Shown here piece by piece: positions 4,987 to 27,956 of a stretch of 29,952 nt of DNA (position 1 is the stretch's first letter; each line of letters starts with the position of its first letter). The DNA is from Octopus sinensis (Eukaryota), in NCBI RefSeq assembly GCF_006345805.1, contig NW_021827578.1:1-29952 (forward strand). The letters run 5' to 3'. The notes beneath the pieces were generated by a model. That model did no database searches. It was given only the letters and a program-made list of their open reading frames with translations, and was not told where the DNA came from. The translations under genes were made by a program, and so were the position numbers.

Positions 4987-5009
4987 TTATCATTTGATAA
5001 AAAAAAATA

Positions 5010-6420: not shown

Positions 6421-6979
6421 TAAAAGTTACATAGACTCCATTCTCCGTCTCTTATCTCTATAACCTGGATTTCAGCAATATCAACTTCAACAAATATTGT
6501 ATATTCTATCTCAAAACCTTCTTTCCTTTTTCACCTTAGTATAACTGATCCTTCTATCGCCCTCCGAAACCCTCGAACCAACAGCAAATTTTTGGCCATT
6601 GAGAACATATATTTCACGTCTCTCTCCTCTGCGAAATCAACTCTTTGCAACGTCTTGTTTCGTCCCTATATATGTATATATTTTCATATTATATTTTGAG
6701 GTAAAAGTTATTCAGTAAATTGAACCAACGAGAACATATAGACTGAGACAGACAGACAGAATCCCTAGATTTCATGGTAACATATTTAGAAGAACATGGT
6801 TATGTCATGTTGACTTCACTGCTTTAGTAATTGCATAAGTATATGTGTGTGTGTGTGTGTGTGCGTGCGTGCGTGTGTATGTATGTATGTGTGTAAGCGT
6901 ATATATGTGTGTGTGTGTGTATGCATGTGTATGTATATATATATATATGTGTGTGTGTGTGGTGTGTGTGTGTGTGTGT

Positions 6980-7290
6980 GTGGAGGTGTAATGGCTCAGT
7001 GGTTAGGGCAGCGGACTCGCGGTCGGAGGATCGCGGTTTCGATTCCCAGACCGGGCGTTGTGTGTGTTTATTGAGCGAAAACACCTAAAAGCTCCACGAA
7101 GCTCCGGCAGGGGTTTGTGGCGACCCCTGTTGTACTCTTTCGCTCCAACTTTCTCTCACTCTTTCTTCTTGTTTCTTGAGTAACGCTGCGATGGACTGGC
7201 GTCGCGTCCAGCCGGGGGAACACATATGTCACAGAAACCGGGAAAACGAGCCCATGAGCTTGGGTACGCTTGAAAAGGGCGCATAAATGA
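6980..7290 (+). mobile_element. Third SINE family (TGGCTCAGTGGTTAGGGCAGCGG head)
   Basis: A and B boxes. Homologous to 28865-29170 and to the head of 25965-26346. Confidence 0.75.
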
Positions 7291-7841
7291 AAAATTATAT
7301 ATATATATATATAATCTACATACATAAATACGTGTATCAGGTTGAGTAAAAAGTGAGCAACGTTTTGAACCAATGAAAAATTTGTACCGGTTTTTTGTAG
7401 AGTTTAAAGTTTTAAAGCTTTTTTTTTCAAATGTTTGATAATATATACAGACATAGACTTGCGTAAATACATCAATAAATTAACTTTGATATTTTTTCAC
7501 CATTGTTACAACGATCTGAAATAAATCGCTTTGTTTGGACGTCTTTTTGGCAAATATTGTGACTTTTGTTGAAATTGGAAGTATTACCATTTTGTTGAAC
7601 TTTTATTGTGTTTGTTTCGAAACACCTTATTTTACTGCCTATTGACAGATTCGTTAACGGTTTTCCCATTGGGGGAAAATTTCCCCATTTTTGAATATTT
7701 TTTTTCCCTCATGTTCATCAGAAGTGTCTTCGTTGGACGAAGATTTGAAGCAACAAGTTCAGGAGTTGAACAGAAAACTGTTGAAAGATACAAAAGAAAT
7801 GAAAATTACAGGTGGAAAATAAAAAGTAAACAACTTTGCGA

Positions 7842-8159
7842 CTCATCTTGTTTGTTGTTAACACAACGTTTCGGCTGATATACCTTCCAGCCTTCATCGG
7901 TGTCTTGGGGAAATTTCGAACCTGGGTTCTCATTCCTAAAGTATTTTTCGAGATTATTATTATTGTTGTTGATGTTGTTGTTGTTGTTATTATTGTTGTT
8001 CAGGTTCCTGCTTGGAATCAAACTCGGAATTTTGGGGTCAGTAGCCCACGCTCTTAACCACTACGCTATATGCCCGTGGGGTAATGATGAAAAGCGCGGG
8101 CTACTAACCCCAAGATTCCGAGTTCGATTCCAGGCAGGGACCTGAACAACAACAGCCAA

Positions 8160-8224
<65 letters not shown>

Positions 8225-8391
8225 CTCGAAAAATTACTGAGGAATGAGAACCCAGATTCGATATTTCCCTAAGACACGAAGGCTGAAGAGTATATCAACC
8301 GAAACGTTGTGTTAACAACAAACAAGATGAGGACAAATATCCGTCAAATGTAAATAATGTACATAATTCCTCATCTCTTAAATATAGAACT
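7842..8391. mobile_element. Palindromic tRNA-head/(AAT)n/hammerhead-like element, both arms
   Basis: Left arm 7842-8066 is the reverse complement of most of the right arm 8079-8391. Spacer TATATGCCCGTG. Confidence 0.75.
7860..7904 (-). ncRNA. Degenerate minimal type-I hammerhead ribozyme motif (also 664-709 minus, 8273-8313 plus)
   Basis: GACAC-C(T)GATGA-A-GGCTG-loop-CAGCC-GAAAC-GTT-GTGTT. Stem I, stem II and a palindromic stem III as in Penelope-type minimal hammerheads. No copy here has a perfect CTGATGA. Confidence 0.55.
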
Positions 8392-9780
8392 GAACTTTGC
8401 GGCTATTGCCGGCGTCAACAGGGAAGACATGAAACTTGAAAACGAAGAAGTGAGCAAGTTTAAAGGAATGCTTCAGCGAGAGGGGTATGAGATCAAACTT
8501 ACCCTTCCCAACGAAGCGAGCATTATACCGCTCGGAAGACCATTATTTTTAAGGTAATATCAATTAAGGGGGAAAAGCTGGAAATGCCGGCGGGAAATAA
8601 CATCATTAGGTGAGACAAGTTGACACTGAATCAGCTTCGCTGACTGACAGGTGACGGTCGTTTAGAAAATGCGCGGGCTAAAACTACGCGCCTTCACTAG
8701 TCAATTAAGGTGAGACAGTGTCACTTGACAACTTGCTGGGGCTGCCTGCTGGAGCCTAGAGGCAGGTATTTAAAGGGAAAATTTTGACAAGTCAGTCAGT
8801 CACCGGCTGACACTCGCTGACGATACATCGAAGAGGCCAGGGAACAGAAGAAAGCAGAAAGAAGACATGCACCCAACACCAGAGCTGAAGACACCGCCGA
8901 AAGGCGGGGCCGCGCCACGTCAAAACGGTAGAGGAGTAGGGGCCGAAACCGGACGTGGTTCCTCCTGATGATGTCTTGAGCTAACTGGATCCTATAAAGG
9001 AGCTGTTGTGGTAGCAGACCACGAAACACAGTTGTAATTCTAACGTACAGGTGGGAAAATACCTACAATCAGCTTGGCAAAATGTTGTATATCTTGCCAG
9101 AGGGAATCGATTCACAACAATAAAGGTGTAGTTCGCAAATGAAGATAAGCCCAGGCAACACTCTGAGTGTTGCCTGGGCTTATCTTCACTTGCGCTATTG
9201 TGCAGTGCCCGAGGATATCGGAGATGTGGGTTTATGCTGAACACCTGCTGTCATGTTTAGGGAGGGCACAGCTGTCTTCCGGGTCTATAATAAAGATTGT
9301 TCCACCTCCCTCCCTCTCAAGGGAAAGGCAAGTTTATTTCATTGCGGTAGTAGCAACTGCGAACGAGGTGGTATGGAAATCGCGTTTGAGAGGAGCAGGG
9401 ACAGGCGACCCCATCTTCAGCCGCGGCTTGGTAAACTACTTCGTTTGCCAACTCAGAAGGAAAATAAGGATGGAGAGGAGCTGCCTACCTCTGAGTGTGT
9501 TCAAGAAAAGATGGAAAAAATGTAACGTACATGTTGTGAGTAAATGTGACCCCTTAAGGGAAGTCAAAAGGTCGAGAAAAGGTTCAATGGTGGTACGCGG
9601 TTTGTGGGGTCGCACCCCGTCCCCCATTTCATTTTTCATAATCAATTTTCATTCGTTTATATATTTATTTATTATTAAATTTTTGATCAAATGTTATCAT
9701 TCGGAATAAATCACCCCCTCATCCCTTGTCTGTCCCCTCTTTGTATATTCCCCTGTAGATTATTAAAGAATAAATCATCT
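8392..9780. other. Unclassified GC-richer insert within the mariner, possibly LTR-like
   Basis: Composition shift; TATTTAAAGGG followed by CAGTCAGTCAGTC; AATAAA near the end; internal 61-bp palindrome. No recognisable coding domain. Confidence 0.3.
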
Positions 9781-9783
9781 GAA

Positions 9784-10766
9784 ATGGAACTGTCACAGCA
9801 CGATATTCGTGTAACTTTGCTATTCAATTTAAAAATAAGGACGTAAAGCAACTGGAACTGGTCGCGATATCAACGAAATGTTTGGTGAGGAAATGACCAG
9901 TGAGTGGTCAGCTCGAAAATGGTTTAAACGATTTCGCAGTGGAGACCCGAGCCTAGAAGATCGTGAGCGTAGTGGAAGCCCATCTGTCATTGATGACGGT
10001 CAATTAAAGACCGTCATTAAGAAAGATCCACGTAAAACCACTCGAGAAATGACAAGTTAGCCAGAAAACTACCAGCAACCATTTGCATGCGATCGGAAAA
10101 TCAAAAGAGCTCGCCAAATGGGTACCACACGATTTGAATAGAAATCAGAAAACGCGCAGATATGGAATTTGCTCGTCGCTTCTTCTCCGTAACCAGACCG
10201 ATCCATTTCTCGACCGTATTTAACTTGCGATAAAAATCATTCTTCGCAGTGGCTGGACCAAAATGAAAGACCGAAGGCTTTCCCTAAACCCGAGCTCTTC
10301 AAACAGAAGGCTATGGTGATTGTTTGGGGGTGTACTGCTGGACTCATCCACTATAACTTCTTAAAACCCGGGAAAACCATTACTGCAGAAACATATTGCC
10401 ATGGAATTGCCAAAAAGAACGAATAACTGCTACTCCTCTGTCCCAGACTGGTCAACAGAAGAGGGCCAATCATTCTTCATGATAATGCTCGACCGCACGT
10501 TTCACTAATGATGCTCCTGAAGTTGATGGAACTTGGTCCTGAAGTTCTTCCCCACCCAGCTTATTCCCCAGACTTTTCTCCTACCGACTACCACTTTTTC
10601 AAGTACCTCGATGGTTTCCCTCGAGAGAAGGGGTTAAAAAATCAAACCGATACTGACAAAGAGTTCATCAGTTCCAGAACTCCAGATTTTTACGTTACCG
10701 GAATATACAAACTTGTAACTCGTTGGCAAAAATGTGTCGATTGTAATGGTAATTACTTTGATGAAA
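9784..10766 (+). pseudogene. Degraded mariner transposase
   Basis: WFKRFRSGDPSLEDRERSG (HTH region), HDNARPH, HPAYSPDFSPTDYHFF and [14 protein letters not shown]. Multiple stops and frameshifts. Confidence 0.92.
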
Positions 10767-10844
10767 AAAATTCCCGCATTCTTGAAATATATTGTGATGA
10801 ATTTCATGTTTCAAAACGTTGCTAAATTGTTACTCAACCTGGTG

Positions 10845-11225
10845 TTTGTGTGTATGTCTGTCTATCTGTGTGTCTGTCTGTATGTGTGTCTCTCTCTGTC
10901 TATGTCTGTCTGTCTGTCTGTCTCTATCTATGTATGTTTGTGTGTGTGTCTGTCTGTGTGTCTGTGTCTGTCTGTGTTTGTGTCTGTCTGTGTGTTTGTG
11001 TGTGTGTGTGGTGTGTCTGTCTCTGTGTGTGTATGTGTGTATCTGTCTGTCTGTCTGTGTCTGTCTGTCTGTCTGTCTGTCTGGGTCTGTCTGTCTGTGT
11101 GTGTCTATCTGACTGTCTGTGTCTGTCTGTCTGTCTGTCTGTCAGTGTGTCTGTCTGTCTGTGTCTGTGTGTGTCTGTATCTGTGTGTATATACGCGCTC
11201 GCACTCACACACGCACAAACACACA
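10845..11225. repeat. (TGTC/TG)n simple repeat
   Basis: Direct reading. Confidence 0.95.
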
Positions 11226-11627
11226 TAGGTGCATGCACACAAGTGCAATGCAGAAAAAGCGTGATCTCCAGTTCCGATGTAGATTTTTTTTTAAGTTCAT
11301 TCATTTTCTCACACAGTAACCTTGTTTCAAACGTAACACATTACTGCAAAATAATCTCACTTGTTTCTTATCAAATATTTATGAAATGATTATGTTTTAA
11401 AAAGAAGCAATAATGCAACCGCTAAACATTAAAATAATGCTATAAGAAGATTTGTTTTTAAAAGAATAATTTAATAAAATAAGCATCGAGGCATATGGAA
11501 AAATGCGTTATATGATGGAACTCGAAGTAGCAAAAGCTATAATAAAATTCATACAGAACATTAAATTCATACAGAACATTGAACAGAGAAGAGCCGGAAG
11601 CTTCTTTAGGATTCTAAGATGTTTAGG

Positions 11628-12030
11628 TGGGCGAGCAGGCAGAATTGCGTAACACCAGGCGAAATACTTAGCGGTATTTCGTCTGCCGTTACATTCTGAG
11701 TTCAAATTCCGCCGAGGTCGAAATTGCCTTTCATCCTTTCGAGGTCGATAAATTAAGTACCAGTTACGCACTGGGGTCGATGTAATCGACTTAATCCGTT
11801 TGTCTGTCCTTGTTTGCCCCCTCTGTGTTTAGCCCCTTGTGGGTAGTAAAGAAATAGGTATTTCGTCTGCCGATACGTTCTGAGTTCAAATTCCACCAAG
11901 GTCGACTTTGCCTTTCATCCTTTCGGGGTCGATAAATTAAGTACCAGTTATGTACTGCTGTCGATATAATCGACTTAATCCGCTTGTCTGTCCTTGTTTG
12001 TCCCTTCTATGTTTAGCCCCTTGTGGGCAA
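11628..12030 (+). mobile_element. Second SINE family, tandem body
   Basis: Reverse complement of the 2500-2900 type. Confidence 0.72.
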
Positions 12031-12194
12031 TAAAGAAACAAGTTGTTTAGGTGTGAGTTAAGCCGTAGTATTAATATGCGCAAAAAACATATGTTCTTTG
12101 TTTCACATTTGATACAAATGACAGGCAAAAATTTAAATAAAGCTGAACAAGTTAACAATTCAACCAACAGTTTGCACCACATAGTTATCAAATA

Positions 12195-12405
12195 TTGCTT
12201 TCAAATTTTGGCACAAGGACAACAATTTTTAGCGTGGGGCAAGTCGATTACATCGACCCCAGTATGCAACTGATACTTATTCTATCGACCTCGAAAGAAT
12301 GAAAGGCAAAGTCGACCTCGGCGAAATTTGAACTCGGAACGTAAAGACGGACGAAATGCCGCTAAACACTTTGCCCGGCGTGCTAACGATTCTGCCAGCT
12401 CGCCG
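12195..12405 (-). mobile_element. Second SINE family, monomer
   Basis: Same body and head in the opposite orientation to 11628-12030. Confidence 0.72.
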
Positions 12406-12692
12406 ATTAAAGTTATATTCTCTTGCACAAACAATAACGATAACGAACAGAAAGTAGTACTGTTCACATCTGAACTGCATCTAGGTCTTACATGGCGAGA
12501 GAGTTACAAAAATCATTTGAAAACTTGATCATTATCGAAACCAGGAAAAGATTAATAGACGTTATATGTTATTCACTATATTGTATGGGGCTGAAATACG
12601 GAGAAGGTTAACAAAAGAACATTGTCAAATAAGCTAAGGTCTTTCGAAATCTGGGCTTACAGAAGATATTTGAAAACATCAATGATAGAAGG

Positions 12693-12850
12693 CGCAGATA
12701 TGACTGTGTGGTAAGAAGTTTGTTTTCCATCCATATAGTTTCGGGTTCAGTCCCACTGCATGGCACCTTGAGAAAGTGTCTTCTTCTATAACCTCAGACC
12801 GACCAAAGCCTTGTGAGCAGACTTGGTTGACTGAAACTTAAAGCAGCCCT
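12693..12850 (+). mobile_element. Same SINE family, head only
   Basis: TGTGTGGTAAGAAG…GGGTTCAGTCCCACTGC…GACCAAAGCCTTGTGAG. Confidence 0.65.
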
Positions 12851-13917
12851 GCATAGGGGCTATCCAGCCTCCCGCCTTCGCCGTGAACAATAATTAATCT
12901 TCTCTCTTAGTTCTTTTGCGCTACATGGGCTCAACTCACCTCCTCTCTTCATCTGACACCAACCTCGCCTCCTCTCTTCATTTGACACCAACCCCATACC
13001 ACTCCACGCACACTAGCACTGACCACTTCTCAGACCCCCACACACAATCTTCAATAGCGTCACTACATATACTACTATATGAACATCTACACATACACAC
13101 ACAGTTTAACTCAGTACACACACCACACACCATCATGCACACTCGCACACCCACACAAGCACATAATACCTGTACACAGACAATATATATACACACATGC
13201 AACACGCATTAACACACGCAACACGCATAGACAAAGATAAATTTCACCCACGTACATACACCATACACATGCACATGGTTCTGGGCTCAGTCCCACTGCA
13301 TGGCAACTTGGGCAAGTGTCTTCTGCTGTAACCGCGAGCCAACCACACACGCACACACGCACACACGCACACGTCAGTCATTCGCCCCCATTCACACATA
13401 CACCCTTACACACTTACACACACCATTCTCGCATACACCCACGCACGCGCACTTTCTCTTGTTGGGATCACCGCCACTATTATTATCTTTCTTTCATTCA
13501 ACCCCTTTTCTCCAATCATTCGCCATGCTGTATCGCTGAACTCTACACGTTTTTCATTCTCTCTCTATTTATTTCTTCTTATGCCTTTCTGTCGAAGAGC
13601 ATAGGCTCAAAATGTAAAATATTTTTCCATTTTTCTCGAGCGTCAAACTAATGCACTCGCTTGATGTTTCTAGTCGTGTCTTCGTCTTCTTTTTTCTATA
13701 AATTTCAACTATATATACATATATATATATTCAATATGTGACCGCGTGCGTATCGTTGGCGATTTTCTTTCTCCGTGTTCCCTTCCTTGGACCTTTCCTT
13801 TTTCTATGTTTGTAACGAAGAGCTCCGCTCGAAACGTTAAATCCTCCTTCTTTCTTCCACGTCCTTCTTGTTCCACGTCCTCGTGTTGTTGTGTTTTCTC
13901 TTCGCTCATGTCTGGAT

Positions 13918-13919
<2 letters not shown>

Positions 13920-14005
<86 letters not shown>
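13920..14005. repeat. (TA)n microsatellite
   Basis: Direct reading. Confidence 0.95.
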
Positions 14006-14006
<1 letters not shown>

Positions 14007-14879
14007 TGAGAAAAAGGAGGCAGTCAAGGCAAAATCAAGATGGTTAAAACAGAACGTTGCGTTGTTCATTTACATGCATCAGACGCTTTTTTCTTTTTCT
14101 GCTTTGTTTAAAAATTAAATGTTTGAAAGAGAAGCAGAGGAATTATATTTCTTATTATGGCTTTTCTGAAAGTAATGATGATGGATGAAGACAAAACTTT
14201 TATATTACGTTATTACTGTTGTTTCTGAATCTGACTCGGATTCATATATATATATATATATATATAATCTGATCATTGGGATGTTGACAACTGTTCTTGC
14301 AGAATTTACCTGAGGAAAGAATACTAGAACCATTCTACCACTGATTAAGAAAGATATCTAATGTAGCTACTTGGCAGAGTAATTCGTGAAGAAGTTTTCT
14401 TTTGAATTCTCTTATCCAAGCAAGCAAAAAAAAAACGAAAAAGAAATGCTACAAGAGGATGAAAGATACTTGAGAAAATATATATATTTAAGCAGGCCTT
14501 GCTTTATTATATAATCTATATCCTACGGAGTGGCTTCTAGCTAAATATACGATATACATACAAACTCATTTGATTAAATGTGCATAAAGAAAAGATTGAC
14601 TTATAAACAGTACCAAATTATTTTTTTTTATATTCTGACTTCATCTTCCTAATGTTGTACTAATATTGAATGCTTTTTCATGTAAAACATGGAATTACAC
14701 AGAATATGGGTCTTGGCAATACAAGTGTAAAGGAATATACATTTTCATGGGACATTGGACTCTTTATTTTTCAGTGCTGGCCACGCACCTTTTCTCCTTT
14801 TCTTACCTTTTCCATCCTCCTTCCTAAAATTGACCTCTTTGAAAGGTCACTTTTGAGAAACTGCATTTATTTACAAATA

Positions 14880-15150
14880 TGTTGGCGTTCTGAGTTCAAA
14901 TTCCGCCGAGGTCAACTTTGCCTTTCATCCTTTCGGGGTCGATAAATTATGTACCAGTTACGCACTGGGGTCGATATAATCAACTTAATCCGTTTGTCTG
15001 TTCTTGTTTGTCCCCTCTGAGTTTAGCCCCGTGTGGGTAGTAAAGAAATAGGTATTTCGTCAGCCGTTACGTTCTGAGTTCAAATTGCACCAATTGTCTG
15101 TGCTTGTTTGTCCCTTCTATGTTTAGCCCTTTGTGAGCAATAAAGAAAAG
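14880..15150 (+). mobile_element. Second SINE family, partial
   Basis: TTCTGAGTTCAAATTCCGCCGAGGTC… body. Confidence 0.7.
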
Positions 15151-15254
15151 AAAAGATATACAATGGAACAGAATAAAGAAAGAAAAAAGAAAAATATTTT
15201 GTAATGAAAAATCAATGAATTGACCACATCAAATCAAAAAGAAACTCTCTTCTT

Positions 15255-15645
15255 CTCCTCTCTCTCTCTCTCCCTCCCTCTCGATCTATCTATCTCTCCA
15301 TCTATCTGTCTGTCTGTCTGCCTGTCTGCCTGTCTGTCTGTCTATCTATCTGTCTGTCTGTCTCTCTATCTGTCTTTCTATCTGTCTATCAGTCTGTCTG
15401 TCTGTCTGTCTATCTATCTGTCTGTCTCTCTCTCTCTATCTGTCTGTCTGTCTCTCTCTCTATCTGTCTGTCTCTCTCTCTCTCTCTCTCTTTATCTGTC
15501 TGTCTCTCTATCTGCCTGTCTGTCTCTCTCTCTATCTGTCTCTCTGTCTCTCTCTATCTATCTGTCTGTCTGTCTCTCTCTTTATCTGTCTGTCTCTCTA
15601 TCTGTCTGTCTGTCTCTCCTCTCTATCTGTCTGTCTGTCTCTCTA

Positions 15646-15686
<41 letters not shown>

Positions 15687-15755
15687 ATCTACCTGTCTGT
15701 CTGTCCTTCCATCTATCTGTCTGTCTCTCTATCTGTCTGTTTGTCTGTTTCTTTA

Positions 15756-15788
<33 letters not shown>

Positions 15789-16075
15789 ACCTGTCTGTCT
15801 GTCTCTATGTCTGTCTGCCTGTCTGTCTCTCTACCTGTCTGTCTGTCTATCTATCTATCTGTCTTTCTCTCTCCCTCTCTCTATCTGCACGCACACGTTC
15901 AGAACACACGCACACACATGAACGAACATGGGCGTGCGCACTCACACACACACATACATGCATATACACACGCACATGCGTATTTATTCATATGTACATA
16001 TGTATATATGAATGCACACCTGCATATTAGTGTGCGCGCACACACGCATTAGCGTGCAAATGCGTACTCGCACGC
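15255..16075. repeat. (TCTG/TCTA/TC)n array grading into (CA)n-rich DNA, ending at the duplication breakpoint
   Basis: Direct reading. Confidence 0.95.
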
Positions 16076-16193
16076 GTGTGCATACACGTGTGTACCTGCG
16101 CATAACAAGCACTGGGGTTTGGTAAACGTTGGGTGTCGGCAATTGGCAGTCCTGTTGGTTGCTGACGGTGACCTTGGTGCAGACGGTGTAAGG

Positions 16194-17221
16194 CAGGGGT
16201 GGGCGAACTTTTTTGATCGCGGGCCGCACAGTGCGTCTTTGGAACCTTGGCGGGCCTCATTTATAAAAATCAAGTGAAAATATTTTTAAAGGCGGTTATA
16301 GACCTATAAACACACAATTGATTGAAAGGAAATTTTGTGAAATATTCCTGGTTTAAGTGATTTTATTTATTTTTAGAGTATCGGGTTCATGTTTTTCGGT
16401 TATTTGCTCCTATAGTTGAAATTATTACAGGAACCTCGGTTATTTTGGACAGCCTGTTATTGCTTACAAATTGCCAGGAACGGAATTTTCCTAGTAAAAT
16501 CTGCACTAATTGTGGACAACCACCTCTTAATATTATGGACAACCATGATGAATATTATACTTAAATTCTAGGATACCCAAAATAAAAGATTTTAAAGAGA
16601 AATTACAGTTTATTAATATGAATTGATATCTGAAATTAGAAACGTCACCTGAAACATTTATTTGAAAAACAAAGCGGCTCTGTAAATAACAATGTCAATG
16701 AGAATAATGCAGCTGTCTACTGTCATTACCAGTTTGTCAAAATTAGGTGTCAAGTTGCTTGTGCTGATTCTTAACACTGACTGAAGATTTGAGTCTGTGA
16801 GAAGTGATCGATTCTTCCCCTTGTTAATTTTCATGATGGAGAAAGTCTGCTCACATATGTGGAAGCACTCCGTCGGTTACGACGACGAGGGTTCTTGTTG
16901 ATCCGATCAACGGAACAGCCTGCTTGTGAAAACGTGTAAGTGGCTGAGCACTCACAGACACGTGGTATCCTTAACGTAGTTCTCGGGGATATTCAGCATG
17001 ACACAGAGAGTGACAAGGCCGCGGCCTTTTGAAATACAGGTACAATAGAAACAGGAAAAGGAAGTAAGAGTGAGAGAAAGTTGTGGTGAAAGTGTACAGC
17101 AGGGATCACCACCATCCTTGCAGGAGCCTCGTGGAGCTTTAGGTGTTTCGCTCAATAAACACTCACAACGCCCGGTCTGGGAATCGAAACCGCGATCCTA
17201 CTACCGCAAGTCCGCTGCCCT
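16194..17221 (-). mobile_element. Duplicated one-ended copy of the same hAT element
   Basis: GTGTAAGG (16186-16193) followed by TIR CAGGGGTGGGCGAAC. Cut off by the viral insert at 17221. Confidence 0.9.
16861..17221 (-). mobile_element. Duplicated copy of the same SINE, with its 5' A-box end removed by the viral junction
   Basis: Matches 25965-26322; lacks AACCACTGGGCCATT. Confidence 0.85.
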
Positions 17222-17651
17222 CCCGGTCAGGTCTCCTATCCAAAAAGTTCAGTGCACAGCACGCTTTAGGAGAGGGGACAGGCAAAGATATCAAATTACA
17301 AAGCAAGATTTGACAGTTAGAAATGACGCAATACCGGGAGGGAGGGAGGTGGAGGAATCTAAAGAATTTAGCGGATAGGTATTCTTTAGATTCCTCCACC
17401 TCCTCCCCCTCCCGGTATTGCGTCATTTCCTAACTGTCAAATCTTGCTTTGTAATTTGATATCTTTGCCTGTCCCCTCTCCTAAAGCGTGCTGTGCACTG
17501 AACTTTTGGATAGGAGACCTGACCGGGAGGGAGGGAGGTGGAGGAATCTAAAGAATTTAGCGGATAGGTATTCTTTAGATTCCTCCACCTCCCTCCCTCC
17601 CGGTCAGGTCTCCTATCTCCACCTCCCTCCCTCCCGGTCAGGTCTCCTATC
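17218..17651. repeat. Type-B hairpin module: spacer-hairpin-inverted spacer-hairpin-34-bp tandem duplication
   Basis: 107-bp spacer 17227-17333 and its reverse complement 17416-17522. Hairpins 17334-17415 and 17523-17603 with loop TTAGCGGATAGGT. Tandem 34-mer at 17583-17616 / 17617-17650. Confidence 0.92.
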
Positions 17652-17782
17652 GTCTGCTAAGTTTTTATCTTGGTAATATTCTTTATCGTGTTCTTTAAAC
17701 AAGCTTCGTCTAATTCGTCGATAGGTTCACCAAGATTTAATTTATTAAATGGTCCGCAATATTTGTAAACTCCGGGTAACAT
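17648..17782 (-). pseudogene. Truncated VP1 copy encoding only about the first 45 codons (PLA2 part)
   Basis: Nearly identical to the 5' end of the other copies. Joined to hairpin module B through a TATC microhomology at 17648-17651. Confidence 0.85.
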
Positions 17783-17951
17783 AACAGTTGCGCCTAAATA
17801 TCAATGGCGCCTAAATGAATGTACTATCACGTGATCTTATAGCGCACTGATTGGCTATTTAGCGATATCCGGTTATTGCATCACTTTTTTTAAAAAGGGA
17901 GATAATAACAATAAAGAATATTACAAAAAATTCCCCTCTTGGGGCCAAATT

Positions 17952-18010
17952 AAAAAAAAAAAACAGTGCACAAAAAACCTTCCTACCGACGAAGTCGGTA
18001 GGGAGGGAGG

Positions 18011-18050
<40 letters not shown>

Positions 18051-18302
18051 TTTAGTAATCCTTGCAAATGCACTGCTCAAAGACGGCAACCGGGAGGGAG
18101 GGAGGTTAGTAGAATATGACTTATCGGCTTAGTCATATTCTACTAACCTCCCTCCCTCCCGGTTGCCGTCTTTGAGCAGTGCATTTGCAAGGATTACTAA
18201 AAAAAAAATAAAAAAAAAAATAAAAAAAAAAATAAAAATTTTTCCTCCCTCCCTACCGACTTCGTCGGTAGGAAGGTTTTTTGTGCACTGTTTTTTTTTT
18301 TT
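17952..18302. repeat. Type-A junction palindrome (fused inverted terminal repeats), junction 1
   Basis: ~170-bp arms around the 9-nt loop TATCGGCTT (18122-18130). Core stem CCGGGAGGGAGGGAGGTTAGTAGAATATGACT. Each arm has a sub-hairpin CCTACCGAC-GAA-GTCGGTAGG and poly-A/T tracts. Confidence 0.95.
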
Positions 18303-18505
18303 TGGGGTTTTTTTTATTTTGATTTTACAAAACATAAATATTTTATCTCGAGGATATTACTAATTATATAATAATGATATTGAAAATGATATAAAATATA
18401 TAAAATATAAAGAAGTTATCTCGAAGATATTACTAGTTATATAATCAATAAACGACTAGTTGCTGCTAGAACTTTTTTTGAAGAAGAAACGATCTCCGGA
18501 CTATG

Positions 18506-20100
18506 TCACCTCATTGCTGGGAAAGCTGATTCATAACCTGTTCCTGTATATGTACGTAGGCTTTGTGGCCATTGATTCAAATTCATTTTGTGTTCAGGAT
18601 TTAATGGACAACGACTAGTTGCTGCTGGAACTCTAGGTAAGTAACCTACAAATTGTGGTGAACCTGATGGTTTTTCGAATTCGATCTCGCTGAAATAATC
18701 TATCGTAATCAAAAAAGTAATTTTCGCTGCTTGAGAATTGCTATCCAAATTGGTATAGGATCTAAAACTGCAACTGGTGGTGGATCAGATGGATTTATTG
18801 GCATTTGAGTCAAACAACTTCTGCTGGGTACTTTTTCATCTGTCAGCATATCGTTCCATGTTGTTTTACCATTTGTTTTCGGGAACCCAATTATCTGTAG
18901 CATTTTGGAATGCGTTAATTTCAACAGGCATTCCGAATCATTACCGATTTCACCGTAAGTTATATGTCCCGCAAGAGCATCAAAATCCGATGCATTAAAC
19001 CAACCTGGAGTATTATTAGTCCATGTATATTGCCAGGTTTGATCTGCTCTCAATACGTTCCATCTACCAGTATTGTAAAGGCTCATTAATTCTCTCCATT
19101 CATCTCTTTTATATTCTCTGTTATTTTGTTTGGTTGAAATTGAAAAGTTTCAGTTGGTACTTTTCTATTGGACGGGATGTTTTAACTTCCCTTCATCTCT
19201 ATTTTCTGGTATATTGTGTCGTAATCGTTATTGACTTGTTCAACAGCCCTTGTCATATTCGAAAGAAAGCTGCATTTGTATCGACATATGTCATAATCCA
19301 AGGTCTCGTATTGAATGTAGTATTAGTAGTAGTAGTACCTTGAAGTGAACTTAGATCGTCTGTTATAGGAACAACGTTTGATACACGAAAACCACACTTC
19401 CTGACTCTCCATTTAGTACATGTATATAAAGATGCTTGTAACTCAGCTTTCGTTGCCGAAGCTCTTAGATCTGCATATGGTATTTCAACGCATCTATGTT
19501 CGAATTTCATATCTGTCCATTTGTGTGAGTTCTTGTTGAATTGAAATTACATTTATCAAGAGGTTGGTCGAAAGCATCCAAGTAATGAAATAGAGTTCTT
19601 GAGAATGTTTTTCTTTCGATTGGATTTTTGTCTCCTATTCTCGGAGGTCGATCGCTCGCAATAGTTGTTCCCTGTCCACTGGAAGTGTAACCGACATCAT
19701 CTGGTGATGGTCCTATGGTATCATCCGCTACAATTCCCGTATCTCATAAAAGATGGTTGCCCACATCGAATAGGTGAAGACATATCGCAATATTCCTGCT
19801 GTTCGTTTCTGTATCTTCTATTTCTTTTCTTTTGATCGTTTACAGGAGGCATCAAGAATTTATCTGAAATATCGTTCGTATATTTAATCTAAAATCTTTT
19901 AGTGTTGATAGCAGTTTTTGCAATAGCAGAGTTTATACCCGGTATTTTATCTAATTCTTTAAAAAAATATCGTCTGCTAAGTTTTTATCTTGGTAATATT
20001 CTTTATCGTGTTCTAAACAAGCTTCGTCTAATTCGTCGATAGGTTCACCAAGATTTAATTTATTAAATGGTCCGCAATATTTGTAAACTCCGGGTAACAT
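18506..20100 (-). CDS. VP1: Densovirus-like capsid protein VP1, copy 1 (more apparent indels)
   Basis: Colinear, near-identical to copies 2 and 3. ORF pieces 18506-18748, 18709-19086 and 19253-19510 match the consensus peptide. ATG at 20100. Confidence 0.85.
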
Positions 20101-20268
20101 AACAGTTGCGCCTAAATATCAATGGCGCCTAAATGAATGTACTATCACGTGATCATTTATAGCGCACTGATTGGCTATTAGCGATATCGGTTATTGCATC
20201 ACTTTTTTTAAAAAGGGAGATAATAACAATAAAGAATATTACAAAAAATTCCCCTCTTGGGGCAAATT

Positions 20269-20598
20269 AAAAAAAAAAAACAGTGCACAAAAAACCTTCC
20301 TACCGACGAAGTCGGTAGGGAGGGAGGAAAATTTTTTTTTTTTTTTTTTTTTTTAGTAATCCTTGCAAATGCACTGCTCAAAGACGGAACCGGGAGGGAG
20401 GGAGGTTAGTAGAATATGACTTATCGGCTTAGTCATATCTACTAACCTCCCTCCCTCCCGGTTGCCGTCTTTGAGCAGTGCATTTGCAAGGATTACTAAA
20501 AAAAAAATAAAAAAAAAAATAAAAAAAAAAATAAAAATTTTTCCTCCCTCCCTACCGACTTGTCGGTAGGAAGGTTTTTTGTGCATGTTTTTTTTTTT
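20269..20598. repeat. Type-A junction palindrome, junction 2
   Basis: Same arms and loop (20422-20430) as junction 1. Confidence 0.95.
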
Positions 20599-20800
20599 GG
20601 GGGTTTTTTTTATTTTGATTTTACAAAACATAAATATTTTATCTCGAGGATATTACTAATTAATAATTATTAATATATGAAAATGATATAAAATATATAA
20701 AATATAAAGAAGTTATCTCGAAGATATTACTAGTTATATAATCAATAAACGACTAGTTGCTGCTAGAACTTTTTTTTGAAGAAACGATCTCCGGACTATG

Positions 20801-22413
20801 TCACCTCATTGCTGGGAAAGCTGATTCATAACCTGTTCCTGTATATGTACGTAGGCTTTGTGGCCATTGATTCAAATTCATTTTGTGTTCAGGATTTAAT
20901 GGACAACGACTAGTTGCTGCTGGAACTCTAGGTAAGTAACCTACAAATTGTGGTGAACCTGATGGTTTTTCGAATTCGATCTCGCTGAAATAATCTATCG
21001 TAATCAAAAAAGTAATTTTCGCTGCTTGAGAATTGCTATCCAATATTGGTATAGGATCTAAAACTGCAACTGGTGGTGGATCAGATGGATTTATTGGCAT
21101 TTGAGTCAAACAACTTCTGCTGGGTACTTTTTCATCTGTCAGCATATCGTTCCATGTTGTTTTACCATTTGTTTTTTCGGGAACCCAATTATCTGTAGCA
21201 TTTTGGAATGCGTTAATTTCAACAGGCATTTCCGAATCATTACCGATTTCACCGTAAGTTATATGTCCCGCAAGAGCATCAAAATCCGATGCATTAAACC
21301 AACCTGGAGTATTATTAGTCCATGTATATTGCCAGGTTTGATCTGCTCTCAATACGTTCCATCTACCAGTATTGTAAAGGCTCATTAATTCTTCTCCATT
21401 CATCTCTTTTATATTCTCTGTTACTTTTTGTTTTGTTTGAAATTGAAAAGTTTCAGTTGGTACTTTTCTATATTGGACGGGATGTTTTAACTTCCCTTCA
21501 TCTCTATTTTCTGGTATATTGTGTTCGTAATCGTTATTGACTTGTTCAACAGCCCTTGTCATATTTCGAAAGAAAGCTGCATTTGTATCGACATATGTCA
21601 TAATCCAAGGTCTCGTATTGAATGTAGTATTAGTAGTAGTAGTACCTTGAAGTGAACTTAGATCGTCTGTTATAGGAACAACGTTTGATACACGAAAACC
21701 ACACTTCCTGACTCTCCATTTAGTACATGTATATAAAGATGCTTGTAACTCAGCTTTCGTTGCCGAAGCTCTTAGATCTGCATATGGTATTTCAACGCAT
21801 CTATGTTCGAATTTCATATCTGTCCATTTGTGTGAGTTCTTGTTGAATTGAAATTTACATTTATCAAGAGGTTGGTCGAAAGCATCCAAGTAATGAAATA
21901 GAGTTCTTGAGAATGTTTTCTTTCGATTGGATTTTTGTCTCCTATTCTCGGAGGTCGATCGCTCGCAATAGTTGTTCCCTGTCCACTGGAAGTGTAACCG
22001 ACATCATCTGGTGATGGTCCTATGGTATCATCCGCTACAATTCCCGTATCTATAAAAGATGGTTGCCCACATCGAATAGGTGAAGACATATCGCAATATT
22101 CCTGCTGTTCGTTTTCTGTATCTTCTATTTTTCTTTTCTTTTGATCGTTTACAGGAGGCATCAAGAATTTATCTGAAATATCGTTCGTATATTTATCTAT
22201 AAATCTTTTAGTGTTGATAGCAGTTTTTGCAATAGCAGAGTTTATACCCGTATTTATTATTATCTAATTCTTTAAAAAAATATCGTCTGCTAAGTTTTTA
22301 TCTTGGTAATATTCTTTATCGTGTTCTAAACAAGCTTCGTCTAATTCGTCGATAGGTTCACCAAGATTTAATTTATTAAATGGTCCGCAATATTTGTAAA
22401 CTCCGGGTAACAT
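20801..22413 (-). CDS. VP1: Densovirus-like capsid protein VP1, copy 2 (C-terminal 362 codons open)
   Basis: ORF 20801-21889 overlaps copy 3's N-terminal ORF (…LFHYLDAFDQPLDK…). Together they give a continuous ~536-aa protein. EIPYADL…RVRKCGFRVSNVVP resembles densovirus jelly-roll strands. ATG at 22413 by alignment. Confidence 0.88.
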
Positions 22414-22584
22414 AACAGTTGCGCCTAAATATCAATGGCGCCTAAATGAATGTACTATCACGTGATCATTTATAGCGCACTGATTGGCTATTTAGCGATA
22501 TCCGGTTATTGCATCACTTTTTTTAAAAAGGGAGATAATAACAATAAAGAATATTACAAAAAATTCCCCTCTTGGGGCCAAATT

Positions 22585-22919
22585 AAAAAAAAAAAACAGT
22601 GCACAAAAAACCTTCCTACCGACGAAGTCGGTAGGGAGGGAGGAAAATTTTTTTTTTTTTTTTTTTTTTTTTTAGTAATCCTTGCAAATGCACTGCTCAA
22701 AGACGGCAACGGGAGGGAGGGAGGTTAGTAGAATATGACTTATCGGCTTAGTCATATTCTACTACCTCCCTCCCTCCCGGTTGCCGTCTTTGAGCAGTGC
22801 ATTTGCAAGATTACTAAAAAAAAAATAAAAAAAAAAATAAAAAAAAAAATAAAAATTTTTCCTCCCTCCCTACCGACTTCGTCGGTAGGAAGGTTTTTTG
22901 TGCACTGTTTTTTTTTTTT
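22585..22919. repeat. Type-A junction palindrome, junction 3
   Basis: Same arms and loop (22741-22749). Confidence 0.95.
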
Positions 22920-23121
22920 GGGGGTTTTTTTTATTTTGATTTTACAAAACATAAATATTTTATCTCGAGGATATTACTAATTATATAATTAATGATATTG
23001 AAAATGATATAAAATATATAAAATATAAAGAAGTTATCTCGAAGATATTACTAGTTATATAATCAATAAACGACTAGTTGCTGCTAGAACTTTTTTTTGA
23101 AGAAACGATCTCCGGACTATG

Positions 23122-24722
23122 TCACCTCATTGCTGGGAAAGCTGATTCATACCTGTTCCTGTATATGTACGTAGGCTTTGTGGCCATTGATTCAAATTCT
23201 TTTGTGTTCAGGATTTATGGACAACGACTAGTTGCTGCTGGAACTCTAGGTAAGTAACCTACAAATTGTGGTGAACCTGATGGTTTTTCGAATTCGATCT
23301 CGCTGAAATAATCTATCGTAATCAAAAAAGTAATTTTCGCTGCTTGAGAATTGCTATCCAATATTGGTATAGGATCTAAAACTGCAACTGGTGGTGGATC
23401 AGATGGATTATTGGCATTTGAGTCAAACAACTTCTGCTGGGTACTTTTTCATCTGTCAGCATATCGTTCCATGTTGTTTTACCATTTGTTTTTTCGGGAA
23501 CCCAATTATCTGTAGCATTTTGGAATGCGTTAATTTCAACAGGCATTTCCGAATCATTACCGATTTCACCGTAAGTTATATCCCGCAAGAGCATCAAAAT
23601 CCGATGCATTAAACCAACCTGGAGTATTATTAGTCCATGTATATTGCCAGGTTTGATCTGCTCTCAATACGTTCCATCTACCAGTATTGTAAAGGCTCAT
23701 TAATTCTTCTCCATTCATCTCTTTTATATTCTCTGTTACTTTTGTTTTGTGTTGAAATTGAAAAGTTTCAGTTGGTACTTTTCTATATTGGACGGGATGT
23801 TTTAACTTCCCTTCATCTCTATTTTCTGGTATATTGTGTTCGTAATCGTTATTGACTTGTTCAACAGCCCTTGTCATATTCGAAAGAAAGCTGCATTTGT
23901 ATCGACATATGTCATAATCCAAGGTCTCGTATTGAATGTAGTATTAGTAGTAGTAGTACCTTGAAGTGAACTTAGATCGTCTGTTATAGGAACAACGTTT
24001 GATCACGAAACCACACTTCCTGACTCTCCATTTAGTACATGTATATAAGATGCTTGTAACTCAGCTTTCGTTGCCGAAGCTCTTAGATCTGCATATGGTA
24101 TTTCAACGCATCTATGTTCGAATTTCATATCTGTCCATTTGTGTGAGTTCTTGTTGAATTGAAATTTACATTTATCAAGAGGTTGGTCGAAAGCATCCAA
24201 GTAATGAAATAGAGTTCTTGAGAATGTTTTTCTTTCGATTGGATTTTTGTCTCCTATTCTCGGAGGTCGATCGCTCGCAATAGTTGTTCCCTGTCCACTG
24301 GAAGTGTAACCGACATCATCTGGTGATGGTCCTATGGTATCATCCGCTACAATTCCCGTATCTATAAAAGATGGTTGCCCACATCGAATAGGTGAAGACA
24401 TATCGCAATATTCCTGCTGTTCGTTTTCTGTATCTTCTATTTTTCTTTTCTTTTGATCGTTTACAGGAGGCATCAAGAATTTATCTGAAATATCGTTCGT
24501 ATATTTATCTATAAATCTTTTAGTGTTGATAGCAGTTTTTGCAATAGCAGAGTTTATACCCGGTATTTTATCTAATTTCTTTAAAAAAATATCGTCTGCT
24601 AAGTTTTTATCTTGGTAATATTCTTTATCGTGTTCTAAACAAGCTTCGTCTAATTCGTCGATAGGTTCACCAAGATTTAATTTATTAAATGGTCCGCAAT
24701 ATTTGTAAACTCCGGGTAACAT
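23122..24722 (-). CDS. VP1: Densovirus-like capsid protein VP1 with N-terminal PLA2, copy 3 (5' half open; apparent frameshifts downstream)
   Basis: ORF 24003-24722 begins MLPGVYKYCGPFNKLNLGEPIDELDEACLEHDKEYY...ADDIF: Ca-binding loop YxGPxN, catalytic HDxxY and the downstream Asp of parvoviral PLA2. A basic KKRK follows. Stop TGA at 23122-23124 by alignment to copy 2. Confidence 0.88.
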
Positions 24723-24800
24723 AACAGTTGCGCCTAAATATCAATGGCGCCTAAATGAATGTACTATCACGTGATCATTTATAGCGCACTGATTGGCTAT
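24723..24800 (-). promoter_or_regulatory. Putative VP promoter (also upstream of the ATGs at 17782, 20100 and 22413)
   Basis: Minus strand reads AGCCAATCAG (CCAAT, 24792-24796), TATAAA (24778-24783), palindromic E-box ATCACGTGAT (24766-24775), then two ATTTAGGCGC repeats before the ATG. Confidence 0.65.
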
Positions 24801-24894
24801 TTAGCGATATCCGGTTATTGCATCACTTTTTTTAAAAAAGGGAGATAATAACAATAAAGAATATTACAAAAAATTCCCCTCTTGGGGCCAAATT

Positions 24895-25115
24895 AAAAAA
24901 AAAAAACAGTGCACAAAAAACCTTCCTACCGACGAAGTCGGTAGGGAGGGAGGAAAATTTTTTTTTTTTTTTTTTTTTTTTATTTTTTTTTAGTAATCCT
25001 TGCAAATGCACTGCTCAAAGACGGCAACCGGGAGGGAGGGAGGTTAGTAGAATATGACTTATCGGCTTAGTCATATTCTACTAACCTCCTCCCTCCCGGT
25101 TGCCGTCTTTGAGCA
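24895..25115. repeat. Type-A palindrome, junction 4, right arm truncated
   Basis: Full left arm and loop (25060-25068). Right arm stops after TTGCCGTCTTTGAGCA at 25115. Confidence 0.92.
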
Positions 25116-25181
25116 ATACGGGAATTGTAGCGGATGATACCATAGGACCATCACCAGATGATGTCGGTTACACTTCCAGTG
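25116..25181 (+). other. Inverted 66-bp VP fragment at the right virus-host junction
   Basis: ATACGGGAATTGTAGCGG…CACTTCCAGTG is the reverse complement of VP sequence at about 24297-24362. The last GTG is shared with host DNA. Confidence 0.9.
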
Positions 25182-26322
25182 TGCATACACGTGTGTACCT
25201 GCGCATAACAAGCACTGGGGTTTGGTAAACGTTGGGTGTCGGCAATTGGCAGTCCTGTTGGTTGCTGACGGTGACCTTGGTGCAGACGGTGTAAGGCAGG
25301 GGTGGGCGAACTTTTTTGATCGCGGGCCGCACAGTGCGTCTTTGGAACCTTGGCGGGCCTCATTTATAAAAATCAAGTGAAAATATTTTTAAAGGCGGTT
25401 ATAGACCTATAAACACACAATTGATTGAAAGGAAATTTTGTGAAATATTCCTGGTTTAAGTGATTTTATTTATTTTTTAGAGTATCGGGTTCATGTTTTT
25501 CGGTTATTTGCTCCTATAGTTGAAATTATTACAGGAACCTCGGTTATTTTGGACAGCCTGTTATGCTTACAAATTGCCAGGAACGGAATTTTCCTAGTAA
25601 AATCTGCACTAATTGTGGACAACCACCTCTTAATATTATGGACAACCATGATGAATATTATACTTAAATTCTAGGATACCCAAAATAAAAGATTTTAAAG
25701 AGAAATTACAGTTTATTAATATGAATTGATATCTGAAATTAGAAACGTCACCTGAAACATTTATTTGAAAAACAAAGCGGCTCTGTAAATAACAATGTCA
25801 ATGAGAATAATGCAGCTGTCTACTGTCATTTACCAGTTTGTCAAAATTAGGTGTCAAGTTGCTTGTGCTGATTCTTAACACTGACTGAAGATTTGAGTCT
25901 GTGAGAAGTGATCGATTCTTCCCCTTGTTAATTTTCATGATGGAGAAAGTCTGCTCACATATGTGGAAGCACTCCGTCGGTTACGACGACGAGGGTTCTT
26001 GTTGATCCGATCAACGGAACAGCCTGCTTGTGAAATTAACGTGTAAGTGGCTGAGCACTCCACAGACACGTGTATCCTTAACGTAGTTCTCGGGGATATT
26101 CAGCATGACACAGAGAGTGACAAGGCCGGCCCTTTTGAAATACAGGTACAATAGAAACAGGAAGTAAGAGTGAGAGAAAGTTGTGGTGAAAGTGTACAGC
26201 AGGGATCACCACCATCCTTGCAGGAGCCTCGTGGAGCTTTAGGTGTTTTCGCTCAATAAACACTCACAACGCCCGGTCTGGGAATCGAAACCGCGATCCT
26301 ACTACCGCAAGTCCGCTGCCCT
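25179..26322 (+). repeat. Right copy of ~1.15 kb host direct duplication
   Basis: Starts GTGTGCATACACG and ends GTCCGCTGCCCT, like the left copy. The host SINE continues intact past 26322. Confidence 0.95.
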
Positions 26323-26498
26323 AACCACTGGGCCATTCCGCCTCCACTCACATATGTAAGTTGATGCAAACAACACAAACATCTTTCTTGCAAATTTTTT
26401 TAGATTTTGGAATTGGGATTCATAAATCTCTCGGCGGGCCGCATGAAAACCTATGGCGGGCCGCATGCGGCCCGCGGGCCCTAGTTTGCCCACCCCTG
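25297..26498 (-). mobile_element. Non-autonomous hAT (Charlie/SPIN-like) DNA transposon, complete ends
   Basis: TIRs CAGGGGTGGGCGAACT / AGTTTGCCCACCCCTG; 8-bp TSD GTGTAAGG at 25289-25296 and 26499-26506. Minus-strand remnant FASTYICE|QTFSIMKINKGKNRSLLTDSNLQSVLRIS…QLHYSH* matches the hAT C-terminal dimerisation region. Confidence 0.9.
25965..26346 (-). mobile_element. tRNA-derived SINE inserted into the hAT transposase remnant
   Basis: Head with A box TGGCCCAGTGGTTAGG and B box GGTTTCGATTCC. 11-bp TSD CTCACATATGT at 25954-25964 and 26347-26357. Confidence 0.85.
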
Positions 26499-26554
26499 GT
26501 GTAAGGTAACAGCTGCTACTAAGGTGGTATGTCCGTATTGTCGGCAGTCAGAGG

Positions 26555-26599
<45 letters not shown>

Positions 26600-26720
26600 T
26601 GTGTGTGTGTGTGTGTCTGTGTTTGAGAGCGCTTGTTGCTTTCTTGTTCCATTTTTTGGACGTATATATATATATATAATATATATATATAAGATATATA
26701 TATACATATACATATACATA
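26555..26720. repeat. (GT)n/(TA)n microsatellites
   Basis: Direct reading. Confidence 0.9.
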
Positions 26721-26950
26721 TATTTATGTATGTATGTAGGTGAAATTTATAGGAAAACAAAAGACGAAGACAGGTGTATGAACAACAAGCTGGTGTAATA
26801 GTTTGATGCTTGGGAAAAAAATTTTAAAGTCTTTATGTTTCGAGCCTATGTTCTTCAACAGAAAGGAATAAGAGAAAATAAACAGAGAGAATGAAAATAT
26901 ACATATATGTGTGTGTCTGCCACGTGGTTAGCATATACTCTAATTAAATT

Positions 26951-27005
<55 letters not shown>

Positions 27006-27027
27006 GTGTGTGTGTGTGGTGTGTGTG

Positions 27028-27370
27028 TAGGAGTGGCTGTGTGATAAGTAGCTTGCTTACCAACCACATTGTTCCGGGTTCAGTGCCACTGCGTGGCACC
27101 TTGGACAAGTGTCTTCTACTATAGCCTTGTGAGTGGATTTGGTAGGCGGAAACTGAAAGAAGCCAGTCTTATATATGTGTGTGTATGTTTGTCTCCTCAA
27201 CTTCGCTTGACAACCGATGCTGATATGTTTACGTCCCCGTAACATTGCGGTTCGGCGAAAGAGAGCGATAGAATAGGTACTAGGCTAACAAAGAATAAGT
27301 CCTGGGGTCGATTTGTTCGACTAAAGGCGGTGCTCTAGCATGGCCACAGTCAAATAACTGAAACAAGTAA
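27028..27370 (+). mobile_element. Same SINE family; a further tail fragment at about 27440-27640
   Basis: Head and tail match. Confidence 0.75.
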
Positions 27371-27825: not shown

Positions 27826-27956
27826 CAGTTTTATATTTAAGAGATGAGGAATTATATACGTTATTTGCATTATGGGCATATGGCGTAGTGGTTAAGAGCG
27901 CGGACTACTAATCCCAATATTCCGAGTTCGATTCCAAGAAGTGACCTGAATAATAA
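27826..27956. mobile_element. Internally deleted copy of the palindromic tRNA-head element
   Basis: Left terminus CAGTTTTATATTTAAGAGATGAGG fused to spacer GGGCATAT and a plus-strand head. Confidence 0.65.

Follow-up and report, generated by a model that had tools for sequence, protein, structure and literature searches.

Defective-interfering (DI) genomes of minute virus of mice and the snap-back and double-D forms of adeno-associated virus (AAV) are small non-coding molecules that consist of telomeres plus a short stretch of adjoining sequence; they form concatemers of alternating orientation and are served by NS1 in trans. To our knowledge, endogenous parvoviral elements almost never retain their telomeres. 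The inverted terminal repeat (ITR) of AAV carries a Rep-binding element made of a tetranucleotide repeat (PMC2900306). Acheta domesticus segmented densovirus (AdSDV) is bipartite, with NS and VP on separate molecules whose corresponding T-shaped termini are identical (PMC10267136). Here, we describe a parvoviral insert of 8 kb in a 29,952-nt stretch of Octopus sinensis DNA (RefSeq assembly GCF_006345805.1, contig NW_021827578.1, positions 1 to 29,952 of the forward strand; hereafter, the window). The insert holds a head-to-tail array of a VP-only unit that bears one terminal hairpin, A, and, at its left edge, a module built on another hairpin, B (the B module, 17218–17651). The B module is viral and not a resident host repeat. 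With a probability that we put at roughly 0.45, and hence tentatively, we take hairpin B to be another telomere variant from the lineage of the array, residing on a gene-less, DI-like mini-concatemer that was co-integrated with the VP concatemer.

The insert invites comparison with each of these systems. As in the AAV ITR, the stem of a terminal hairpin contains a tetranucleotide repeat, (GGGA)3 in the insert versus (GAGC)n in AAV. Flip and flop loop orientations (in the octopus, those of hairpin A at two loci), rearranged ITR junctions, and a duplication of target DNA at the integration site are also common to both, and AAV integrants likewise include head-to-tail concatemers joined via arm–hairpin–arm palindromes of the double-D kind. 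The differences are that the octopus hairpins are simple and I-shaped rather than T-shaped, the host is a cephalopod, the unit encodes VP only, two hairpin types are built on one stem, and the duplicated host segment contains no (GGGA)n motif. Binding and nicking of the octopus hairpins by NS1 are predicted by analogy. The B module resembles parvoviral DI or ITR-only mini-genomes in comprising telomeres and a short spacer in alternating orientation, but its spacer and inner hairpin are not a deletion derivative of the A-ended VP genome, and it is seen as integrated DNA only. The VP segment of AdSDV, which bears a phospholipase A2 (PLA2) domain, is ~3 kb long and thus comparable to the 2.3-kb VP-only unit of the octopus; in contrast to AdSDV, hairpins A and B differ beyond a 16-nt stem, no NS segment was found, and the relatives of the octopus VP are monopartite. 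Clusters of endogenous viral elements derived from infectious hypodermal and hematopoietic necrosis virus (IHHNV) in shrimp (PMC9357335) are a further instance of grouped parvoviral inserts in the genome of a marine invertebrate, a comparison that concerns the clustering. Within the library searched, no paper on cephalopod parvoviral elements was retrieved.

Layout and folding of the B module

The B module is made up of the following segments, given in window coordinates:

17218–17226, plus strand: stem remnant, the last 9 nt of the 3' outer stem of hairpin B, CCCTCCCGG, at the host/insert junction (sequence reading, repeat finder)
17227–17333, plus strand: spacer S(+), 107 nt, non-coding (sequence reading, repeat finder)
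17334–17415, plus strand: hairpin B copy 1, 82 nt, 3' outer stem slightly imperfect (fold -36.6 kcal/mol, z = -10.7)
17416–17522, minus strand: spacer S(-), inverted, 107 nt, 98% complementary to S(+) with a single 1-nt indel
17523–17603, plus strand: hairpin B copy 2, 81 nt, perfect 34-bp stem and 13-nt loop (fold -42.8 kcal/mol, z = -13.5)
17604–17617, plus strand: first 14 nt of S(+)
17618–17651, plus strand: slip duplication, 34 nt, an exact copy of 17584–17617 (20 nt of the B 3' arm and 14 nt of S)

Hairpin B comprises a 16-nt outer stem, CCGGGAGGGAGGGAGG, an 18-bp inner stem, and a 13-nt loop, TTAGCGGATAGGT, and its inner 49 nt occur exactly twice in the window against an expectation of zero. 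Taken singly, the terminal palindromic hairpins A and B have stems of 32–34 bp and fold with z-scores of -10.7 to -14.3. The spacer forms an imperfect hairpin of its own (z = -3.9), with CAGTGCACA at the tip. Folded as DNA, the entire region from 17218 to 17651 reaches -218 kcal/mol (z = -33), and self-comparison returned 17218–17536 as an inverted repeat of itself. The joint at which the far end of S meets the hairpin stem (CCCGG/TCAGG) is precise and occurs four times, with S measuring exactly 107 nt on both sides. Of the stem remnant at the left edge, the first 4 nt (CCCT, 17218–17221) are common to host DNA. We found no coding capacity in the module; the listed open reading frames (ORFs) that overlap it (102 and 87 amino acids) both begin in the host flank. 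A tRNA scan was negative, and an Rfam search gave only sub-threshold matches to generic miRNA hairpins, as expected for any perfect hairpin.

The original prediction, made from the sequence alone, had described a spacer–hairpin–inverted spacer–hairpin arrangement with a 107-bp spacer. Sequence reading and the repeat finder confirmed that order; the truncated B stem at the host junction and the 34-nt duplication were missing from the earlier description. A dumbbell of about 270 nt had also been proposed, and the 270-nt B–S–B stretch does fold into one. The claim of alternating inversion around hairpins applies in part. Within the B module, orientation alternates across full hairpin copies, in the order S(+), B, S(-), B, and the start of S(+), as it would in a rolling-hairpin or fold-back product. 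This is true of the B module only, whereas the VP array runs head to tail.

Relationship between hairpins B and A

The 16-nt outer stem is identical in hairpins A and B, whereas the inner stem, loop, and flank differ. As predicted, then, hairpin B combines the outer stem of hairpin A with an inner stem and loop of its own: the 16-nt sequence was found at 11 sites in the window against 0 expected, all confined to the B module and the hairpin A junctions. In hairpin A, this stem continues into a 16-bp inner stem and a 9-nt loop, TATCGGCTT (fold -38.2 kcal/mol). Further likenesses lie close to the shared stem. The hairpin-proximal flank is similar in the two types (TATTGCGTCATTT in B versus TTGCCGTCTTT in A), and the core of the B loop, AGCGGATA, resembles the reverse complement of loop A (AGCCGATA) as well as the TTAGCGGTTAAGT motif in ~125-nt terminal repeats at a second VP locus, in Octopus vulgaris (OX597817.1:168360004–168381614; hereafter, L001). 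The arms of both hairpins, A and S alike, hold a second hairpin and a CAGTGCAC motif. These sequence comparisons support B as a genuine second hairpin type related to hairpin A.

The spacer itself is a different matter. It had been noted to share CAGTGCACA with the type-A arms, and the 9-mer is indeed present in both (at 17250 and 17964); with some 0.2 such 9-mers expected by chance on a rough estimate, one 9-mer alone is not significant. Otherwise, the spacer and the A arm show no significant similarity (z = 1.4), and homology between them was rejected on that ground. A weak similarity that includes GATATCAAATTAC links the spacer to a 178-nt segment at L001, termed X (z = 3.8; 8 of 1,000 shuffles), which is suggestive only. 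We also rejected an origin of B from A by mutation after integration, because the units of the array differ from one another by only 2–6 substitutions per ~2 kb, whereas the inner stem, loop, and flank of B differ from those of A throughout.

The B module lies within a single recent insertion

The boundaries of the insert and its main parts are as follows:

16076–17221, unstranded: host DNA, copy 1 of a 1146-nt direct duplication (self-BLAST, 98.5% to copy 2)
17218–17221: host/B junction, microhomology CCCT
17648–17651: B/VP unit junction, microhomology TATC; homology to the unit begins at 17648
17648–25115, minus strand: head-to-tail array, 3.2 copies of a ~2316-nt VP-only unit (direct repeats, ~98%)
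25116–25181, plus strand: inverted VP fragment, 66 nt, a 100% identical copy of 19677–19742, which follows a truncated palindrome A and closes the insert on the right
25179–25181: junction of the right end with host DNA, microhomology GTG
25179–26322, unstranded: host DNA, copy 2 of the 1146-nt duplication

The host duplication brackets the entire insert, B module included. Its second copy runs past the left breakpoint without any B sequence (...gctgccct/aaccactggg), so the B module belongs to the inserted DNA; the DNA flanking it on either side (GCTGCCCT and GTCTGCTAAG) is unrelated, so the module has no target-site duplication of its own. Since everything between the two duplicates, B included, forms one insert, we regard B as viral cargo. 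The co-integration of a second hairpin module with the array, as originally predicted, thus stands: B and the VP concatemer became linked no later than at integration.

The two host duplicates are separated by 1 substitution and 9 indel events; a single substitution in 1146 nt indicates a recent insertion. The array units, besides their 2–6 substitutions, differ by 18–30 indel events per ~2 kb, mostly of 1–2 nt. Differences of this kind speak for a very recent insertion seen through an indel-prone long-read consensus and against old decay, and the frameshifts in the VP copies may likewise be consensus errors rather than real decay.

The duplication recalls the partial target duplication of Rep-mediated AAV integration, though without a (GGGA)n motif in the duplicated segment. 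The nearest such motif in host DNA lies ~800 nt upstream, in a CT-rich microsatellite, and we rejected a host (GGGA)n motif as the targeting site since the duplicated segment has none.

Searches for further copies of hairpin B and for NS1

Public data were searched for the hairpin and its presumed replication protein. The exact hairpin pattern (stem ... stem) had no match in IMG/VR or the JGI metagenomes. A looser pattern (stem ... TTAGCGG) retrieved 152 loci, all of which were dismissed as chance; none had the full hairpin motifs or a parvoviral gene. IMG/VR yielded no relatives of the VP, and an exact-protein look-up of the window ORFs, including one that crosses the B module, gave no match in the collection.

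No link of hairpin B to any NS gene was found. Using tblastn with two NS1 proteins, we detected no NS1 in the window or at L001. For O. vulgaris, a single NS1 is annotated (P0031); it is a relic of 287 aa that lies on a different chromosome (L003, OX597822.1), at a locus with no (GGGA)n hairpin. An SF3 helicase fragment of Octopus bimaculoides is its counterpart at 84% identity, and the relic is therefore probably old. It extends in pieces over ~1.6 kb (9258–11004 of L003) between 67-nt direct repeats that are 93% identical, and it seems to have broken into a longer reading frame of the host or of a transposon. An NS cassette bounded by hairpin B was not found in the window, L001, L003, the NS1 contigs from Logan and ENA, IMG/VR, or the JGI metagenomes, searches that did not extend to whole octopus genomes or reads.

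More distant relatives show how VP and NS1 are arranged elsewhere. On four ENA/Logan contigs (L002, L004, L005, and L009; VP 30–38% identical), VP lies directly upstream of NS1 on the same strand of one contig. No telomere-like hairpin was detected between the two genes in L004, L005, or L009; the L002 stretch was scanned in part. L005 reads VP–NS1–VP with a period of ~3.4 kb, which suggests monopartite genomes of very compact size that appear in the contigs as concatemers or circles. In L002, the VP and NS1 cassettes are each preceded by a 127-nt repeat. The closer NS1 contigs from Logan (L007–L012) had no hairpin motifs. Judged from these contigs, the lineage is monopartite where it can be seen. 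Bipartite ancestry is thus not needed to account for the VP-only unit, which could just as well have arisen by deletion as be a true segment.

Origin of the B module

The favored reading of hairpin B as a second telomere variant on a gene-less mini-concatemer can be put as a sequence of steps. The starting molecule would be hairpin B, 107 nt, and hairpin B, ~270 nt in all, resembling a DI or ITR-only mini-genome. The (GGGA)3 stem would be the binding site for the NS1 of the lineage, by analogy with the Rep-binding element of the AAV ITR, and a single NS1 supplied in trans would handle A- and B-ended DNAs alike. By the same analogy, the flank motifs common to both hairpin types are, with the repeat, candidates for the NS1 binding and nick sites. 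Hairpin-primed copying, either rolling-hairpin or fold-back, would produce the alternating arrangement, and in a single recent step template switching or microhomology-mediated joining would link the product both to the chromosome and to the VP-only concatemer with its head-to-tail units. The shared stem, two hairpin types, integration in one block, microhomology at every junction, and 1.1-kb target duplication are all seen directly. Like DI and ITR-only genomes, the B–S–B stretch has telomeres at both ends and no coding capacity.

Several observations weigh against this account. The alternating pattern covers only ~1.1 periods, which does not demonstrate independent replication of a 270-nt molecule; an autonomous mini-replicon, an ITR-only junction fragment, and a fold-back made by repair are not separable by this pattern. 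Both B loops have the same orientation on the plus strand, so hairpin B itself offers no evidence of flip and flop. Neither the spacer nor the B inner stem has a detectable parent in the VP unit; DI genomes derive from their parent by deletion, and a classical DI genome formed by internal deletion of the A-ended VP genome is excluded. The parent must therefore have been a different, unseen genome or variant. No other copy of hairpin B or the spacer was found in the window, in the ~42 kb of L001 and L003, or in public viral and metagenome contigs, although octopus genomes were not searched directly. In addition, the assembly is noisy in indels, so the copy numbers of short palindromic pieces may be unreliable.

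One alternative assigns B to the terminal repeat of a separate coding genome, either an NS partner segment or a full-length helper, of which only an ITR-to-ITR junction fragment survived. The 296-nt S/B/inverted-S stretch has the same architecture as palindrome A (351 nt), which joins the VP units, and the second hairpin and CAGTGCAC motif found in both types of arm fit this account, as does the absence of NS1 from the VP-only unit, the window, and L001, by which NS1 must have come from elsewhere. AdSDV provides a precedent for a bipartite parvovirus (PMC10267136). However, the corresponding termini of the AdSDV segments are identical, whereas A and B have no more in common than the 16-nt stem and short motifs; the searches turned up no NS gene bounded by ends of this kind, and the L003 relic has no (GGGA)n hairpin; and in each of the four relatives above a single contig holds both VP and NS1, no hairpin having been detected between them in L004, L005, or L009 (L002 scanned in part). 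The far end of S, moreover, meets hairpin B four times and never unique sequence. Telomere and subterminal sequences, besides, already differ from one octopus locus to the other. A coding genome as the source is therefore rather unlikely, and the idea of a missing NS segment is somewhat weakened. A broader reading, which builds on the original prediction, takes B for a separate molecule, either a satellite-like mini-replicon that is non-coding or one end of an NS partner segment, and has it share NS1 with the A-ended VP genome through the (GGGA)3 stem; this, too, we consider doubtful.

Host repair could also have built the module around a single type-B ITR at the end of the concatemer, with the inverted duplication, second hairpin, and 34-nt repeat all arising at that stage and no mini-replicon ever having existed. 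Signatures of template switching surround the module, namely the exact 34-nt duplication, the inverted 66-nt VP fragment, the microhomologies of 3–4 nt, and the 1146-nt host duplication; moreover, rearranged ITR junctions and partial target duplication are described for AAV integrants in literature cited by PMC2900306 and in related papers. A precise joint between the S end and the hairpin stem that recurs four times, together with two S copies of exactly 107 nt, is better explained by the copying of a pre-existing B–S–B molecule, and repair would still require a B-type telomere to begin with. We hold this explanation to be unlikely. Far less credible is a host foldback or MITE-like repeat unrelated to the virus (MITE, miniature inverted-repeat transposable element), or an artefact of assembling palindromic long reads. 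The assembly is indel-noisy, and long perfect palindromes are prone to chimeric reads. Nevertheless, the 16-nt stem is identical to that of viral hairpin A, the module sits inside the host duplication, is absent from host copy 2, and lacks a target-site duplication of its own, and no other copy exists in the window or the ~42 kb of other O. vulgaris loci. With its unique inner sequence, B is also not a mis-joined copy of A. A host MITE is mostly excluded at this site.

The VP array, hairpin A, and the surrounding host DNA

The array starts partway through the VP reading frame and breaks off within palindrome A, and each of its units contains one 351-nt palindrome A and one minus-strand gene:

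17649–17782, minus strand: VP gene, 5' fragment (~first 44 codons), cut at the B-module junction (tblastn)
17952–18302, unstranded: palindrome A, 351 nt, composed of arm, 73-nt hairpin A (18090–18162), and inverted arm
18506–20100, minus strand: VP gene copy, broken (against the intact L001 copy: 16 frameshifting indels, 4 substitutions)
20269–20598, 22585–22919, and 24895–25115: further copies of palindrome A, the last truncated
20801–22413, minus strand: VP gene copy, broken (against the intact L001 copy: 4 frameshifting indels, 3 substitutions)
23122–24722, minus strand: VP gene copy, broken (against the intact L001 copy: 11 frameshifting indels, 3 substitutions)

At its N-terminus, the VP product has a parvoviral PLA2 domain (PF08398, E = 3e-13; 50.3 bits, cut-off 23.9); for the capsid body, the comparison with PF16530 scores 17.5 bits, short of the cut-off of 25. 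The product shares 99% identity with a 536-aa "capsid [Octopus vulgaris]". The closest structure-solved capsids by sequence are those of Penaeus monodon metallodensovirus (PDB 6wh3, E = 5.7e-5) and IHHNV (PDB 3n7x, E = 0.008), a weak, local likeness over ~50–55 residues only. A small side hairpin in each A arm, with a 9-bp stem and a GAA/TTC loop, leads into a GGGAGGGAGG run, and CAGTGCAC follows at a distance of a few bases. These side hairpins lie at 17981–18001 and 18251–18271 and recur at the same positions in later units; the arrangement may amount to another copy of the putative NS1-binding motif.

At L001, a VP array occupies 2265–16361 between flanks that differ from those in the window. 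Its VP units lie in both orientations, include two intact 536-aa VP frames, and are ~99.6% identical in substitutions to those of the window. Hairpin A of the window (18090–18162) differs from the L001 copies (6515–6587 and 9508–9580) at three base pairs, with both partners of every pair changed, and its loop is identical yet oppositely oriented relative to VP (flip versus flop). Judged from sequence, such differences are what hairpin transfer in a replicating parvovirus produces. L001 also contains runs of ~125-nt direct repeats in up to 11.4 copies (12119–13559). Each repeat joins three parts, namely the proximal A arm, the outer stem's 5' half, and a non-palindromic stretch that includes TTAGCGGTTAAGT. 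Given how close TTAGCGGTTAAGT is to the B loop, the B-loop motif is not unique to the octopus insert described here. Segment X (e.g., 6658–6835) is absent from the units of the window. With these repeats, segment X, and the changes in hairpin A, the telomeric and subtelomeric sequence is the most variable part of the element.

The left breakpoint falls in a dispersed host repeat of ~170–195 nt with a tRNA-like 3' part, 85–88% identical between copies, in which ARAGORN detected no tRNA:

17052–17221, 7005–7178, 26153–26347, and 28972–29144: copies of the dispersed host repeat

The host DNA at 1–16000 and 26400–29952 is rich in microsatellites (TG, TA, TC, and TCTG arrays; e.g., 10794–11230 and 15204–15900) and contains several families of inverted 100–320-nt repeats, such as the pair at 2548–2871 and 11652–11975.

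Implications

This locus is a cephalopod parvoviral insert with intact telomeres of two types. Because these share a common stem, they provide a sequence-level view of the replication origin of a cephalopod parvovirus. The insert also offers a view of how gene-less or single-gene derivatives travel with such viruses, and it displays a mode of integration, comprising a head-to-tail concatemer, microhomology joints, and a 1.1-kb target duplication, that is reminiscent of Rep-driven AAV integration. If B came from a separate component, multi-component parvovirus genomes would extend beyond the single insect example; were B indeed a distinct molecule sharing NS1 with the VP genome, what the cephalopod germline has captured here, with the two telomere types preserved intact, would be a parvovirus-like system of several components.

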